64,000 nt of DNA, taken from assembly GCA_003693705.1 (NCBI GenBank), contig RBZT01000286.1, positions 1 to 64,000 on the forward strand, given 5' to 3'. Each line of letters starts with the position of its first letter. Position 1 is the stretch's first letter. This DNA is from Polymyxa betae A26-41 (Eukaryota; Protista; Endomyxa: Phytomyxea). Shown in pieces: positions 10,916 through 34,248 of the stretch. The notes beneath the pieces are model-generated. The model was not told the origin of the DNA. It was given only the letters and a program-made list of their open reading frames with translations, and searched no databases. Position numbers and translations under genes: made by a program.

Positions 10916-12327
10916 ATGGATCCGTTAAGCGATGCCGACCGAGAGGCATTAGACGCCTTGCTCGATATGATCAGAATCGACACGATCTCGGCTCAAGGTC
11001 CCGTGAATGGGTCATACGCTACCATAGCCAATCTGCTGCAAAACCAATGCCAACGAGCAGGTCTCAGCACAGAAATCCTGGAGCTGGCTCGTGGCAAACC
11101 GATAGTCGTGGCGACCTGGGTCGGATGCGAGCCCGATCTGAGCTCTCTGCTGCTAACAGGCCATTACGATGTCGTCCCTGTTGTACCAGAAAAATGGAAT
11201 TGCGATCCATTTGGTGGAATAGTTCGAGATGGCCTCATTTTTGGTCGCGGGACTCAGGATATGAAATCGTGTTTAGCCGCTTATATCCAATGTAATTGAC
11301 GACTTCATTCGACGGCTGTATTCTGTACAAGATTTAGAGGCTAATTTCAGCATAGGTGTTCGCCAGTTGAAGCATTCTGGATTTAAGCCCAGAAGAACTG
11401 TACATTTATTATTCGTGCCTGATGAAGAAATCGGTGGTAAAGATGGCATGGAAGCATTCGTCAAGACCGAACGGTTTCGCCAGCTGAATATCGGATTCGC
11501 GATTGATGAAGGCTTGTGTTCTCCAAACGAAACGGTACCGGTGTATTTTGGTGAAAGGGCAATCTGGTGGATCCGTTTGATTGCTTCAGGTGAAGCGGGC
11601 CATGCTAGTACATTTCTCAAAGAAAGTGCTGTGCAGAAGCTTCATTTGTGCCTGGACCAAATATACGGTTATCGTCAAAAGCAAATCGAAAAACACCCAG
11701 AATGTGATCTCGGTGGTACTTACTTTTTTTTGTTGAAATTGATATGTGACCTTCTGAACAGACATTGTTGCTATCAATGTGACTTCCATAACAAGCGGTA
11801 GCGAATCTGCATTGAATGTAATTCCAGAGAAAGCTATAGCGGGTGTAGATATTCGTATTCCAGCAACAGTGGATTTGGCCCAGTTTGAAGAGCTGTTGCG
11901 GGAGTGGACTCAACAGAATGGGATTCAGATTGAAAAGTTGGTATCATGTGATTCGAATCCGGTCACAGATTTGCAGAACAATCTTTGGTGGAATGGTTTA
12001 CAGGAATCATGCGCTCGAATGAATATTCGCATAGAACCGAAGATTTTCCCTGCTGCAACTGATAGCCGCTTCTTACGGAATCTTGGCATCCCGTAAAGCT
12101 ATATCACCGCTTGTTTGTAGAATTGTAATTTTGTATCAGGTGTCTGGGATTTTCACCGTTCCCAAATACCGAAGTCAGGTTAGTGTATTGTTGTTCGTGA
12201 ACTCTGATTTCAAAATTCAAATGAGTTCTCTAGATTTCACGACCACGACGAATACATATCCATAAAGGCGTTTCTTGCTGCCATCCCAATTTACTCCACA
12301 ATAGTGAAATCGTTATCCTGTTTATAA
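10916..12327 (+). CDS. ACY1: aminoacylase-1 (M20A metallopeptidase; multi-exon)
   Basis: GHYDVVPV, GRGTQDMKS, FVPDEEIGG, IFPAATDSRFLR, HDHDEY. Confidence 0.93.
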
Positions 12328-12340
12328 ATATTGTATGCCA

Positions 12341-15300
12341 TTAGAACGAGTTGGAAGAGCACGAAGTATTGAACACTTGACTCAAGTGAAGAGGTTTTTG
12401 ATCCAGATATTGTGATAGCCAGTCAATTAGCTTCACACTACTCCCGATATCTGCAATTCCAGTAACTTTGAACAAAAGATCCAGGTTTACGACACCGGAA
12501 GCAGGTTGACTTCCCAGAAACCCTGCATAATCAGTTCCAGCTGCACGAGCTGTTGACAGTGCATTGTTGTGCAGTAATTTCAAAATCGGGCAAATTACTA
12601 CAGACAATGAGAACTGTCTCGTTCCGGATTCTCCAGTTCCACGTCCAGAAACAGCTCCAAATTGAGCATATAATTGTGTCATACTTATTCCTGCATCTTG
12701 CAGAAAGTCGGCAATCGCTTCGGATTCACTCAATACAGATAGAAAAAAATCGGACAGTTCCTTGGAGTGCACCGAATTAAATCTAGCAATAGCGAGCTTC
12801 CCCGATAACGATTGCTGTTTAGAAAGCTCAAGGAGTACCCGTTCCGTTGACCTGTGTTTGTCTTTAACTAATATGAAAACTCGTAAAGATCATTACCAGA
12901 AAGTTGAGTCTGGAACAGCAGATTTGAGCACCAGCGGCACTGAAGTGGATTGATTTGTAACACCCCAAGATTTGAATGCTTGTTGTCGCCATTCATCCAT
13001 TGCAGATCCTATCAGTTTAGAGACTTGAATCCCTTCTATTGTGGAATTGCCGAAATTTTCACTACTATCGAATAATCAGTGTCTGTTTGAAGCCCTTGAA
13101 TGAACGAACCTGCTGAAATCAAATGCGTTATCAGTGACCAAGGTAATGTCTGCATCAGGGTACAGCTGCGAAATCGCCTGCGTATGAAAGGCGGCACCGA
13201 TTGCTCCATTTTGCCAGCCCGTTATTACGACCTGTATCTAAGATTAAAAAACTATCACATGCACGTGGCAAGTAAACCTTCTTGGGCGTTAGATGTGCAT
13301 TGTTTAGCCATTGCAAAACTCGATCAAAATTTGCAGAGCCCCAATGGTAAATTTCCATGCCGGCATCATAGAACGCTATCTGCTTGCCCAGAAACGGATC
13401 CGCTGTGCTATTATAGGACATAAATTGCACATAAAATAATCATCCACAACACCAACCATAACGGGACGTACAAACTTGTCCAGTGATAAAATGGGTTGTC
13501 CAAGGAAGTGCTGAAAACACCAGATATCGTCTTATGCTTGAGAGGATCTGTTATCTGTGTAGTAATAGAGTCGTTATAGGTTCCCGTGCCGAGAGTCGTC
13601 GAACACGTTAGCAAATTCCAACATATCCCACCGCCTTGAAAATTGATGATCAAGTTGCTGTCAGAGCCAGGTCCTGGATTCACAAAAAATGAGAAGGGGT
13701 CTCCCCGAGAGCATTTTGCCACGTTGGTTTTGGATTGGAGCTGAGTGAGTGCTCAGTGTTATCGGAAAATGCTTACAATCGGAAGGTTACCTGCGACCAA
13801 ACAAAATTCGGGAGGGCCGAAAGTGATACGTCATCTGGATAAATTGTCAAATCGGCAACCGTATTATTGCCTTCATGTTGCTTCTTATAAGCAGCTGCTG
13901 CAATAATGATAATGAGCAGTGCGAAGAGGAACCCGTATTTAATGCTGTGTCTTTTGCAGTGACTTTTTCCTCTGTCAGCTCCCCGAAGCAGCGGTTGTTC
14001 AGGATCAGAAACTTCTTGCTCGCCTACTCTGTCGTCATGTTCGCCTAGCCCACCAATTTGCAAAAACACCTGTTAGAGAATGCCATTTAATACCGAAATC
14101 ATAACTGCTGGAAAAGTTTACACATTACTTCTTCTAAAGTCGATAAACTCAATTGGATGTCTTCAATGCCCAATTCTTTTCGTTTGTTCGTAAGAATAGT
14201 GAACAAAGAAGGGAGCTGATCCGAGCTGCTCCTGGGGACGTTGAATTTCTGGCCGCCTTCTTCAACGGAGAGCAAAGTTACTCCTTTCAAGGAATCAATC
14301 ATAAAGCGACCGATTTATATTGAGAACCTTTCAGAAGGTGTTCGAATAGCTCCTTAGTTTTGACATGGAACTTCTGATGCGAACGAATGGTGATTCGATA
14401 CCCCGACCCCTTTGAACCCGATTAAACGTGTCGCAGATCACGGTAAGAACAGTTTACAAATTTTTGCTTCAGACGAATCGAGTTGCCAATGCAAGCAAAT
14501 CGACCGGAGTGCATAATACCTCAAAAACCATTACAGCAAATAGGGCACAAACTGGAGCAGAACTGACCAACTCTGTCACCAAGGACATCAGCTTCCTCCA
14601 TACTATGTGTCTGTGGCAAGCTTATCAAGAGATAGTGTAGAAGTGCAATGGAAAAGCCTACTGTCAGAATTGTGATTCGGTCGTGTTTTACTCGCTCGAT
14701 TAAGTTCCAAACTTTTCGGCGTGAAACAGGGTCCATACCTGAACCAAGCCAAATTATAGACATTCAAGTAATAGATGAGGTTGCTACCTGTAGTCGGTTC
14801 ATCAAGATAAACAATTTCAGGATTGCCAATCAGCGCAATAGCAACTGACAGGCGGCGTTGCATTCCACCGCTGAAATTCCCTGAAGGATCGAAAGTCAAA
14901 AGGCAATGCAAAAATTCTCTTGAAAAAAAGACCTGCGAGATTATCGGCATCATCAAGCAAATCGACATCTTTTAAGCGATCCACAATCTCTTGATCAACC
15001 AGTTCTGCTTCAACTTGCTTAAGACTAGCAAACAGCTGTAAGTGTTCGCGGGCTGTCATCTGTTCCCACAGAATGTCATATTGAGGACAGACCCCTAATT
15101 ACTGACATCATGACACAAATCCACAAAATAACCGATCTACCCATAGATTTTTGAACCGAAGACAATGACGTTCTGATTGACTTTCCTACATTTCATGTTA
15201 GGAATTAAGCAACTCATAGACAGTTAGTCTAACCTTTAACGAAAGCATCCCCATCTGTGGGTCGAGTTAGCCCCGTTAATGCTGAATAACATTAATTAGC

Positions 15301-17521
15301 GGTCTGGAATCCGGCTTTAGGACGTTACCGTTGATAGTTGTGGTTTTTCCTGCCCCACTAAAAAACATCCCAAAGTAAGACATTAATAATGACAATCATA
15401 ATGTCCACCTACTTATGGCCGAGCAGACAGAAAAGTGTTTTCGGCTGAATTGAAAGAAAGACACCGCGAACGGCGTGGAAATCTTTCGAGGGATCGCGGC
15501 GAAAACCGACTGAACTTATTCAGCAATGCATCGACAAAGTCATAAAATAAACAACTGACATTTGTATCCATAAAATGTTTTCTGAAGATTAACCATTCTA
15601 AATGGTGCAGTATTGTTGGGCTCCATTGCTTCCTTCATTTCCTGGCGAACATCTTCGTCGATGTCCTGATACTGATGAGAGTTGAGGTCGACTTCGGACA
15701 CGATGGGAGGTTTTGCAAGTGAAGGGAACCAGTATGATGGCAACAAGAAAAAGTAAGGTGGCTGGCACACCCCGTTATCGTCAGGAATGACCTTCAAACC
15801 TTGGGGTTCGCTTACTGCAATTGGCCAGTTTAAAACAATCTTACTTGATCCAAATAAATTGACAGCAGAAGATAAGTTGTCGCATCAATAAGAAGCCAAT
15901 AATACGACGACGTCATTGGGAAAAATGAATCATTGTCGCCACGTTGTGACCACCTCATTCCTGGAGAATCCTGTGTATTTGAGGTGCTTGAAAGATCCCC
16001 CATCCCTAAGTGGAGGTCAATTTCGCAGATGCCAAGAGTTTATCTAAAATACCCTTAGCAAGGAGAGCAAATGGTAGAAATGAGAATGGAATCCGATAAT
16101 ATTCAGCAGTAGTTTCTGTAAATACAAGAGAAGCGAATCCCTGAATGATAGAGCCCACAAGAAAGACTCCAAATCCCAAAACTATTGAAGACTTAGTAAT
16201 CATTACACTCCTAAGAAATGCATACCAGTGGCGGTCCTTGATCTGGATACAAAGGCAGCTAACAGAAGAACCAAAGGTGTCATTGAAAGGCCGAAGAGGA
16301 AAAACAGGACGAAGTACAGACTAAAGTCGTTTTTCATGAAGAATTTCATCTGGAAAGCGAGTCCCGCAAAACAGAGTGAGAACGTTGATATGATGTTGTA
16401 TCCGAGGACGATTATAAAACCAGCAGTTAGATAGACTGAATCTCGTAGACCCATCTGCTTCATCGATGACCGCAACTTCAATTCTTTTTCAGACACCTGC
16501 AAACAGGGCGCATTTTAGAATTAGCAAAGTGAAAATATAAATTGCCATACAAGCCTGCCGAGCTGAATAACAAAATTAAACATCAGCGCCCCAAAGAAGA
16601 AAGACGGCCCATACTGAGCAGCCACTGAATCAGCTTAGTAAGGCTTTTATAACAGGAACACAGGCCAGACCATCAAGTGGAAGCGTTTCCGGATGAGTGA
16701 AACTAATAAAGTCGTAATCTACTGATATCTGTCTATCTGATATCAGCGTGGTCACTAACAGAAATCAGAGTACCATATTGAGGATACGGATTCCCGCTTA
16801 CTGATTCCTTTGTCTGCTGCTTTCTGCATCGGCAGCAAAACATTATAAACAGGATCGTAATTCTTGCCTCTAAATGTGGTCGTCGTCATGTTATATTGGA
16901 CGGCATATCGAGCGCCGACCACATTCGATCCGTCTTTAACGAGGAAGAAATTGTATGCCGCTTGCGTAGTATTTGGATGATCAAATAAATACCGATCCAA
17001 ATCGGCACTTGTGTCGAACCCCTTTATCTGCATATCCAGAAATATGAGCTTTGATATGACAGAGTCACAAGACTGACGTCAGAATCTGTAAGATCGTTTT
17101 GTGAAGTGATGGTTCGCATGATATCTTGAATGACAGGCTCGGCTTGTGGTGCATACGCGATCGTGATGCAATCCGTTGCTGATGTAGATCGTCCAACAAA
17201 ACACTTCGGGATTTTAGCGATGGGAGTGACCGAACTAGTTCGAACTAAGTAGAGCGATTTCAGTTCATTATAACCCAGTACCTATACCATTTTCTTACCT
17301 GGACGAACAACATCAGAGAGTCGTTCATTATGCTCGAAAGCAACCTGTAAAACATACAGAAACAGGACAAAAATCACAGGAACAAGGATAGAGATGATCG
17401 TCGATCGATAATTCCGCCTCTGCATCAAATTGAGTTGATATTACAGCCTAACACCTTTCCCAACCGCAATGATCAGATCCTTTCTCAGAATGATGGCCAG
17501 CTGCTGAAACCAAAACCCCAT
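12341..17521 (-). CDS. ABCA-family half transporter fused C-terminally to a TM-anchored pectin acetylesterase/Notum-like domain
   Basis: ABCA part: [30 protein letters not shown], Walker [42 protein letters not shown]|VFL. It continues in frame through a TM helix to [27 protein letters not shown]. The confidence refers to the single-gene model; each domain identity alone is about 0.9. Confidence 0.75.
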
Positions 17522-17965
17522 CCTGGTCCAGGACGAGTAGGGAAATGGGACCAAAAGGCAGGCCGGGACACAGCAGCCATCAACGGACTGAGAAACGATG
17601 CAGAGTGGCTGCACCGCATCTAGATGATTTTGGGCTGATGGGGTCATAGGGAGATGGGGTGGCAAATGGCTACTTGTTATGCTGCTGGATCATAGGTTCG
17701 ATTATTGGGCATGACATCTGGGGTTCGGACCCTTATCCAATTTCTCAGAACAGCAGTAACAATCAGGTTAGGATACTCGCCCTGTTCTAATTCGTGTACT
17801 TTTGACAAATGCGATGGTATGTATTGGCATAAAAGCAAGGTCGGAGTATCAAAAGAGCCGGTTTTATCGAGCTCGATGCCGCTGAAAACCTAGTACGAAG
17901 TCTTGAGCGACACATGGCACAGTAATGTGGCACATCCAAGAAGATCAATACTGAGTGAAGGGATC

Positions 17966-32225: not shown

Positions 32226-32399
32226 GTTGCTTAGTGTCTGAACTACGTTATGTTCATTGAGCAGTGTCATAAACTATTTCTCACTCAGGTTTTACTGATT
32301 TTGATTCTTGCACTCAACGGTAGGAACCCTAGACCCTAACCCTCTTGGTCCTTAGAGAGAAAATTGCGCACAGGAAATGATTTACAGGTTGCCTTTATC

Positions 32400-34248
32400 A
32401 TGACCAATGCTGCTTCGTATCCGCCTGCACTTGAGTCGATTCTATCTCTGCTGCGCTCCAATCAAGACGAGCGTAAGCTGGCCGGGCTGTTGCTGGTAAC
32501 CAAGGTCATAGTCGGCCAAGACTGGTCTGTAGAAATACTCTCTCTTTTGGCGGATGCTGTGGGCTCGACATTTTTGCGACGGCTATTACGCAGCACCGAC
32601 AATGAAGGCGTCTATGTTGATCTAGCGATCAATGTCATCTCCGCTTTGATAACGTCTCCGGATGTTGCCAAACGTTTCGCTAGAGATGGCTTGTGCACTG
32701 ATATTATGGCTGTCCAAAAAGGGCCGTTGACTTCCGATCTCCTCGCTACTTACACATCGTTTATTAATGCTGGAGATCTCACACCTTTTTCATTGATGAG
32801 CTCTATTTGGCAAAATGACAATCAACGTGATTTGATGAAATCTGTCGTCAATAGCTGGATACGGCCTGAATATGCACAACAAATTTTATTTAGTAAGCGC
32901 GACAATATTATGGCTGTTCTTGGTGAAGATTTGAAATCGCGTCAAGATCTGCGAAAATTCGAAGCTCTGGAACTCATTGTATCAATTCTATCACAGTTAC
33001 ATCCGTTCAGTGATTTGCCGGTCGATGCCTATGATTGTTTAGGTAATGGTGGTATCGGATCATGGTCCACCGCCATCCGAGACGGTCTCGTCCAGATACT
33101 GTCGTCTCGTGTTAATGCTCAGCAAAGACGGCTGGCGCTTCTAGCGTCCTGGTTTCTGCTTGATTTATTCGGATATTCTTGGGCATCCACTGGAGAGCCA
33201 ATCAACGCCCGCTTCCCGACGCTCCTCATCACGACCGTGGCGGTCGAATCGCGGCTTCTTCTTGAGTATTACGCCGAACACCCAACAATCAACGAGGACA
33301 TCGAAACGTTGCGCGCCTGCTTTGTCATTGCCAATATAGCCATAATGTTTCTGGTGGAAGACGACGCCACATTCGATCAGTGTAAGCGCAATTCAGAATT
33401 TCATTGGTCGCTTCTGCCACCTGATTCGCTCATGTTAATCCATTCTCGTCTAAGCGAGACGATTCGCACTCTATTCGATTTCCTCGTGGAATGCGAGTCT
33501 CAACAGCGATATCGGGATCCCATCATGCCTCATATCTGTCGCGTTCTTGGCACCTGGGTTAGTGAGGGTAATGCACTTTCTCACAATGCAGCAATTTGAG
33601 GCTGACAGTGTTTGCTCAGATTCGGAATCTTTCCAATCCGATTTGGAGACGAGCTGCGCCTTTCTTGTCAAAGTTTGTCAAGAGTCCAAAGACCCTTTTA
33701 ACCCTTTTGTGTATCTAGTACCGGCATTCGCTCGTTTATCGATAAATTTACAGGGCGCCGAACGTCTTGTCGAAAGCGGGCTTTTAGACCAGTTATCAAG
33801 ACTTATTTCACTCATATCGGAACGTGTTGGTGATTCCGTTGCATTGATGGCTGGCGATGTTTGCCATATTCTCATCAACATTATTGAGTGCATTCCTAGC
33901 ATTACTTCCGAGCCAGCTCTGCAGAAAATCATGCCGTATTTGCCATCAATTTTCGACAATCTTTGGTCGTCCCGTGAGAACTTGGTTCCATGTTTACAGA
34001 CTGTATGCGTCCTTCTAGCTGTTGGCTGTGATTCGCTCACGCCGTCTGTTATCGACAGAGACGCAGAAGATATCTGGCCAAAAGTCGCCTCACTGCTTTT
34101 CGACTATACCGTCGACGACCAAGATTTGCAGGACCTACGTCGAGTGACCATGAAACATTTGACTTCCTGTATGCCGCGTTTCAGAATGTTATCTGACGCT
34201 TTGAGGTCTTCAGACTCAGTTCCAGAATCGATTCAAAAACTCCCGTAA
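32400..34248 (+). CDS. NCDN: neurochondrin-family protein (probably 2 exons)
   Basis: LLRSNQDERKLAGLLLVTK; AVGSTFLRRLLRS; IRDGLVQILSSRV; VAVESRLLL; RVLGTWVSE. Confidence 0.8.

Follow-up and report, generated by a model that had tools for sequence, protein, structure and literature searches.

Organization of the locus

The window analysed here, a stretch of 64,000 nucleotides from contig RBZT01000286.1 of Polymyxa betae A26-41 (GenBank assembly GCA_003693705.1, positions 1 to 64,000), carries on its minus strand a series of exons that begins as a half-size ABCA lipid transporter and continues, in one open frame, into a pectin acetylesterase (PAE)/Notum-like domain (Table 1). The original prediction had described this arrangement at positions 12341-17521 from the bare sequence, and all features observed there are confirmed at their coordinates. 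The ABCA-typical ending STLEE is split by a phase-0 intron from the residues VFLQIGG, behind which follow an acidic linker with the motif DPEQPLL, a transmembrane (TM) helix and a second phase-0 intron. Both introns are removed in an RNA-derived contig, and the exon carrying the TM helix indeed lacks an in-frame ATG. Taken together, the support for the locus is good at the level of the gene and only partial for the mechanism.

Table 1. Features of the ABCA-PAE locus (positions in the window) and of related proteins.
Feature	Position	Strand	Description
Fused-gene coding region	12341..17521	minus	27 exons, 26 GT..AG introns of 44-59 nt, 1302 codons plus stop
Start codon	17519..17521	minus	MGFWFQQL..., typical ABCA N-terminus
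ABCA membrane part, exons 2-9	15845..17464	minus	TM1 (aa 27-45), ectodomain of ~217 aa, TM2-6 region; from hydropathy and Pfam
Nucleotide-binding domain (NBD) and R1-like regulatory segment, exons 10-21	14129..15791	minus	Ends ...STLEE; from motifs and ABC_tran
Intron 21	14070..14128	minus	59 nt, phase 0, GTAATG...CTAACAG, splits TLEE/VFL; joint 14067>14127 (cut +2) in the contig from run X1
Exon 22 (junction exon)	13791..14069	minus	93 codons; VFLQIGG, acidic/basic linker with DPEQPLL, TM7, juxtamembrane stretch, Trp of the PAE module
Seventh TM helix (TM7)	13887..13937	minus	Kyte-Doolittle maximum 2.22 (19 residues)
Intron 22	13741..13790	minus	50 nt, phase 0; joint 13740>13791 in the contig from run X1
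PAE/Notum-like domain, exons 23-27	12344..13740	minus	aa 899-1302; PF03283 and homologue profile
First in-frame ATG downstream of TM7	13356..13358	minus	Codes for residue 1010, within the esterase domain (112 residues from its start) and behind the GGG oxyanion motif
Nucleophile elbow GWQNG	13205..13219	minus	Gln at the catalytic Ser position (codon 13211-13213); aligned to consensus GcSAG, E 1e-10
Ser at the catalytic His position	12497..12499	minus	Low-confidence alignment of exon 27 with the homologue profile
Triad, this gene			Ser position = Gln (GWQNG), Asp = Asp, His position = Ser (weakly aligned)
Triad, P0012			Ser position = Gly, Asp = Asp, His = His
Triad, P0046			Ser = Ser (GWSGG), Asp = Asp, His position = Asp
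Patched/Dispatched-like PAE family, protists			P0064, P0158, P0159, P0160, P0083, P0161, P0163-P0166, P0170; 13th TM helix and C-terminal PAE

Gene model and transcript evidence

The exon-intron structure was built on a 5252-nt contig from a public sequencing run (X1), which covers positions 12232 to ~17630 without a single mismatch to the window and skips only short CT..AC segments, i.e., GT..AG introns for a gene on this strand, including introns 21 and 22. Fifteen of the 26 introns are joints listed directly for this contig, eight were solved from the anchors of its pieces combined with the constraint of an open frame, and the three most 5' introns were placed by frame and consensus alone. 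One intron is ambiguous by 11 nt (16625-16670 or 16614-16659). Around the junction the agreement is exact, both for the contig piece 13791-14067 (no mismatches) and throughout exons 21-23 (no mismatches, no gaps). Arithmetic on the piece coordinates puts the end of the contig near 17630, and the next in-frame ATG upstream of the assigned start, at 17647, lies beyond that end. Within the presumed 5' untranslated region (17485-17630), an ATG at 17619 opens a 44-codon open reading frame (ORF) that overlaps the main start in another frame.

The degree of splicing was also assessed from 31-mer shares in four runs of one study (X1-X4). These shares amount to 0.61-0.62 (sampled words), compared with 0.606-0.619 expected for a fully spliced model. 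All four runs therefore hold the spliced form with essentially no introns, and their word shares give no sign of intron 21 retention.

Downstream of the gene, the same X1 contig also lacks the last intron (~12176-12231) of a convergent plus-strand neighbour coding for an M20 peptidase-like protein (window 12146-12343), so that the two convergent transcripts overlap at their 3' ends.

The ABCA transporter part

The family assignment of the transporter is based on matches of several exons. ABC2_membrane_3 (PF12698) matches exon 7 (E 2e-10; 40.6 bits at a cut-off of 31.6), and in the local model an ectodomain of ~217 residues lies between the hydrophobic segments 27-45 and 264-282. This ectodomain between TM1 and TM2 has no Pfam family match, and a phmmer search with the exon of the TM domain against the Protein Data Bank (PDB) returned no match. 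The Walker A, signature, Walker B and H-loop motifs of the NBD are all intact, an ABC_tran Pfam match falls on the upstream exons, and exon 15 matches 13 solved structures, all of which are ABCA7, ABCA4, ABCA3 or ABCA1 (E 2e-9 to 5e-8). Towards the C-terminal end, exon 21 aligns with residues 815-855 of ABCA3 (E 0.012), the R1 family PF23321 is found at E 0.02-0.03, under its cut-off, and the TLEEVFL ending is complete once intron 21 is removed.

Half-size ABCA proteins were said in the original prediction normally to end soon after this motif. At four paralogue loci whose frame reaches a motif of the TLEQIFL/SLEQIFI type (L009-L011 and L014), the frame stops 26-40 residues past the aligned end, whereas the gene described here runs on for ~495 residues more.

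The genome contains many other ABCA-type loci, with at least a dozen ABCA-type NBD matches. The C-terminal tails of L009-L011 (C2:680-994, C955:21069-21383 and C93:5074-5367) are nearly identical (ATLEQIFLSIA...), which points to a recent expansion of ABCA genes.

The junction exon and the seventh helix

Exon 22 joins the two parts of the gene. Its 5' end codes for the last residues of the ABCA motif, and its 3' end for TM7, the juxtamembrane residues and the conserved Trp with which the PAE-type module begins; behind intron 22, PAE-like sequence including FQGGGICW continues. The exon is open solely in the joining frame, and just 0.4% of 20,000 shuffles stay open. Its 3' half is weakly similar to the TM-proximal parts of two relatives introduced below, P0012 (E 0.015) and L017 (E 0.010). 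Read from the sequence, TM7 is flanked by six Lys/Arg (and two His) within the 15 preceding residues and by KK behind it; these charges suit an N-in/C-out orientation of the helix.

Retention of intron 21, with the frame running on into it (14099-14128), would give an ABCA protein of normal length without the tail, and regulated retention could in principle switch between tailed and tailless forms.

The PAE/Notum-like domain and its catalytic residues

By Pfam, PF03283 on exon 23 is the sole PAE match in the 27-Mb genome (E 1e-6; 28.6 bits at a cut-off of 26.6). A profile of 83 homologues extends the assignment to exons 23-27, which are matched colinearly (profile positions 80-164, 167-212, 213-248, 252-272 and 337-396), albeit weakly for exon 26 (E 0.02) and exon 27 (E 0.005-0.006). 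Searched against the PDB, the family profile retrieves Notum as the only clear solved relative (E 5e-20). For the domain of the relative P0012 (residues 150-580), an AlphaFold model with a pLDDT of 77 gave Notum in all of the top 50 Foldseek matches (TM-score 0.4-0.6). A search of the ESM Atlas found nothing beyond PAE clusters.

The GGG oxyanion motif is kept, as are invariant Cys, Gly, Asp and Asn positions, when the exon alignments are read against the invariant columns of alignment A2. One of the invariant Cys codons is split by intron 23, which supports the splice at that intron. The domain harbours five N-x-S/T sequons and six Cys.

The Ser-Asp-His catalytic triad is incomplete. In the nucleophile column, 76 of the 83 homologues have Ser, and the replacement by Gln in this gene is firm; in the column of the catalytic His, which is occupied by His in 75 of 83, the replacement by Ser is weakly aligned. 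Judged by these residues, the domain should not be filed as an active esterase. The full triad is present in none of the three members of the ABCA-type clade (this gene, P0012 and P0046; Table 1), each of which has lost a different residue, and this pattern suggests that catalysis was already dispensable in their ancestor.

Relatives and conservation of the join

With exon 23 as query, phmmer retrieved 303 matches among 1.84 billion representative proteins. The relative P0012 (580 aa) begins ...EEVFLSVGALHDD, behind which come a linker, a TM helix and a domain of the PAE type. On its contig, L002, which stems from another sample, ORFs for ABC_tran and R1_ABCA1 lie directly upstream on the same strand, and a 143-nt GT..AG phase-0 intron joins ...QLSLTTL to EEVFL..., after which the frame is open to the stop. 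The ABCA motif, the linker, the helix and the whole PAE-like domain form a single exon in this organism. The L002 orthologue matches ABCA3 NBD-R1 at 1e-27; its piece that covers the end of the NBD and R1 is 54% identical to exons 18-21, as opposed to 28-36% for eight paralogues in this genome, and the two fused genes are therefore orthologues. Synteny in related genomes had been named as a check with the original prediction; the orthologous ABCA-PAE join of L002 belongs to a distant relative.

A further relative, P0046, groups with P0012 (SH-aLRT 99). On its contig (L017), the frame stays open upstream of the called Met as far as the contig end and enters a TM-helix tail much like TM7; the sequence further upstream is missing. 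Identity between these domains is only ~40% in the best-conserved exon, and the arrangement has therefore survived a long divergence. The closest relative of exon 23 is P0001 (60% identity), the upstream context of which is known from gene-call spacing alone. A homologous-protein search with P0012 returned only P0012 itself, and a scan of JGI metagenomes with alignment A1 yielded four loci, none of them with an upstream ABC match: L004 is a standalone 381-aa ORF in a setting of bacterial-looking ORF density, and the other three are short.

Elsewhere in the window (32364-33596), a 411-codon open exon has a neurochondrin Pfam match (E 2e-36) and no relative in a word-indexed protein search, which suggests a lineage that has been sampled poorly so far.

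A parallel in Patched/Dispatched-like pumps

Several of the long exon 23 matches are Patched/Dispatched-like proteins of the sterol-sensing domain (SSD)/resistance-nodulation-division (RND) type with a C-terminal PAE domain. A region-restricted search added about a dozen more, including two records with automatic names from Hondaea fermentalgiana and Durusdinium trenchii. All six of the Patched-type proteins inspected have one extra TM helix ~75-95 residues before the GGGxC motif, and the three domains checked (P0064, P0083 and P0031) each have a complete triad. In a tree from a quick search without bootstrap, in which the ABCA-type branch is long, 12 of the 13 Patched-type PAE domains form one clade (SH-aLRT 96) with the ABCA-type pair outside. 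The tail was apparently acquired independently by two unrelated classes of lipid exporters.

A wider hypothesis, which we put forward tentatively and consider doubtful as it stands, holds that lipid exporters have repeatedly gained a Notum/PAE-like domain as exoplasmic partner, each time independently and together with one extra TM helix: a catalytically dead one in the ABCA transporters described here, a catalytically intact one in the Patched/Dispatched-like RND pumps. The family would originally have handled exported acylated or esterified lipids, and the ABCA version would be a built-in lipid acceptor that alters the release of the cargo.

A probable fused transporter with a predicted exoplasmic pseudo-esterase

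We consider it probable that the locus is one gene giving rise to one fused membrane protein of 1302 residues, in which a pseudo-esterase on the exoplasmic side would bind or receive lipid next to the ectodomain of the ABCA part. The in-frame fusion proposed in the original prediction is supported by the exact splicing, by the lack of a separate start and by the join in the L002 orthologue. The polypeptide would comprise a half-size ABCA transporter (TM1, the ectodomain of ~217 residues, TM2-6, the NBD and the R1-like segment), a cytosolic linker of ~33 residues, TM7 and a hydrolase-type domain of ~400 residues. The NBD and R1 are cytosolic in ABCA transporters. Because the NBD is cytosolic and one extra helix follows, the C-terminal domain would come to lie on the exoplasmic or lumenal face, where TM7 is predicted to place it next to the ABCA ectodomain; PAE/Notum enzymes usually act on this side as well. 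Half-transporters are usually homodimers, and a presumed homodimer would carry two such domains.

The C-terminal domain would no longer hydrolyse esters while keeping the Notum-type alpha/beta-hydrolase fold, and may bind lipids or acyl groups, thereby receiving, holding or selecting what the ABCA part transports. TM7 and the linker could possibly feed the occupancy of this domain back to the NBD and R1. The earlier notion of acyl recognition rather than hydrolysis fits a domain in which the nucleophile Ser is replaced by Gln and the catalytic His probably by Ser.

A number of points weigh against this interpretation. That X1 is an RNA run is inferred from the missing introns, the kind of the run being unrecorded. 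Its contig runs into the convergent neighbour gene and thereby joins overlapping transcripts, and since contigs here merge such transcripts, its continuity is no proof of a single molecule. The raw-read RNA runs X9, X12 and X5, which bear the same species label as X1, contain no reads at the locus and are no test either way. The homology searches were made with single exons, and the joined translation served only for frame, hydropathy and motif positions. The assignment of Ser to the His position rests on a weak alignment (E 0.005). In P0012, an in-frame Met ~10 residues before the TM helix would permit an independent anchored form in that organism. Finally, a single mRNA molecule spanning the ABCA and PAE exons, the fused polypeptide, lipid binding, the exoplasmic location and dimerisation are predictions.

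Alternative readings of the locus

The fused polypeptide could be a precursor that is cleaved in the linker into an ABCA transporter and a type II membrane-anchored PAE-like protein, which would then be separate, possibly associated subunits. The linker is long and charged and shows little conservation when this gene is compared with P0012, and standalone TM-anchored PAE proteins seem to exist, e.g., P0018 (located 215 nt from a contig end). Yet a cleavage motif was not identified, relatives whose domains are only ~39% identical have retained the fusion, and the tail is attached in three independent transporter lineages. We regard cleavage as unlikely.

It is likewise quite improbable that the locus yields two products. 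In this reading the ABCA mRNA would terminate within exon 22 or shortly behind it, or keep one of introns 21 and 22, a second mRNA for the PAE-like part would start in the same region, and the X1 contig would look continuous only through their overlap. The contig does merge with the transcript of the convergent neighbour, and in P0012 a Met stands a few residues ahead of the TM helix. Retention of intron 21 brings a stop 9 codons past STLEE, which corresponds to a normal ABCA length, and retention of intron 22 brings a stop after 5 codons. However, the word shares in X1-X4 leave no room for retained introns, and an ABCA mRNA spliced to 14069, as needed for TLEEVFL, would run without a stop to the end of the PAE-like domain, except where it keeps intron 22. 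The second product fares no better: exon 22 has no in-frame ATG, and an mRNA starting between 14128 and 13741 would meet out-of-frame ATGs, the ORFs from all ATGs of this interval in any frame being at most 15 codons long. The first in-frame Met, at residue 1010, lies past the GGG oxyanion motif, and a complete domain is therefore impossible from that start. A separate anchored esterase gene is unlikely because it would have no usable start codon, and the in-frame join is conserved in L002.

A third alternative assumes that the domain is still an esterase, operating with non-canonical residues. The three members of the ABCA-type clade all have the Asp, P0046 retains the Ser (GWSGG) and P0012 the His, and the Patched-fused relatives have full triads. 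On the other hand, not one ABCA-type member has a complete triad, the residue lost differs from member to member, as expected once catalysis is no longer under selection, and the domain described here has Gln at the nucleophile position. Residual esterase activity appears improbable to us as well.

An assembly artefact, in which a deletion or collapse at the junction put two genes in frame, is very hard to maintain, since the RNA-derived contig passes through exons 21-23 without mismatch or gap, an independent organism shares the join, and no point in its favour was found.

Comparison with known systems

The proposed fused transporter resembles several known proteins in its parts. Half-size ABCA transporters of the plant ATH/ABCA2-12 type and the halves of ABCA1, ABCA3, ABCA4 and ABCA7 share with it the ABC2_membrane_3 domain, an ectodomain behind TM1, the full set of NBD motifs, a putative R1-like segment and the TLEEVFL end. 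Known ABCA proteins and the paralogues in which the C-terminal motif was found end 26-40 residues past that motif, in the cytosol, whereas here a linker, TM7 and a domain of ~400 residues, predicted to lie across the membrane, follow. Notum and the plant pectin acetylesterases (PF03283) have in common with the C-terminal part a PAE match above the cut-off, the GGG oxyanion motif and the conserved Cys. Notum removes acyl groups from Wnt and ghrelin. Notum and the pectin acetylesterases are secreted, active Ser-Asp-His hydrolases; in contrast, the domain described here is tethered to a transporter, its Ser is replaced by Gln and its His probably by Ser.

The closest architectural parallel is provided by the Patched/Dispatched-like PAE proteins, in which a cytosolic linker, an additional TM helix, ~60-90 juxtamembrane residues and finally a PAE domain are likewise attached to a lipid transporter; in both cases the odd helix would put the domain outside. 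They differ in belonging to another transporter superfamily, in having an intact triad (in the three checked) and in forming a PAE clade of their own. With regard to the presumed loss of activity, the cholinesterase-like pseudoenzymes are comparable: neuroligins, gliotactin and the C-terminal domain of thyroglobulin have an alpha/beta-hydrolase fold, have lost the nucleophile and act as extracellular binding modules on membrane proteins. They belong to a different hydrolase family and have no transporter attached.

The relatives of both types of fusion are unannotated contigs or bear automatic names, and a full-text literature search found no paper on an ABCA-PAE or a Patched-PAE architecture, in keeping with the suspicion voiced in the original prediction that the arrangement is undescribed.

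Implications

In the common view, ABCA transporters have a cytosolic C-terminus and deliver lipid either to acceptors in solution or to the ectodomain of the transporter itself. A natural ABCA protein whose chain returns through the membrane to a Notum-like pocket domain would serve as a model for transporters with a covalently bound acceptor, suited to structural work on how the cargo exits. For the evolution of pseudoenzymes, the ABCA-type clade offers three members that have lost different residues of the same triad. Finally, the occurrence of the same tail on two unrelated lipid exporters points to a function connected with lipids for a PAE/Notum branch to which none has been assigned, and provides a testable hypothesis for both types of fusion.

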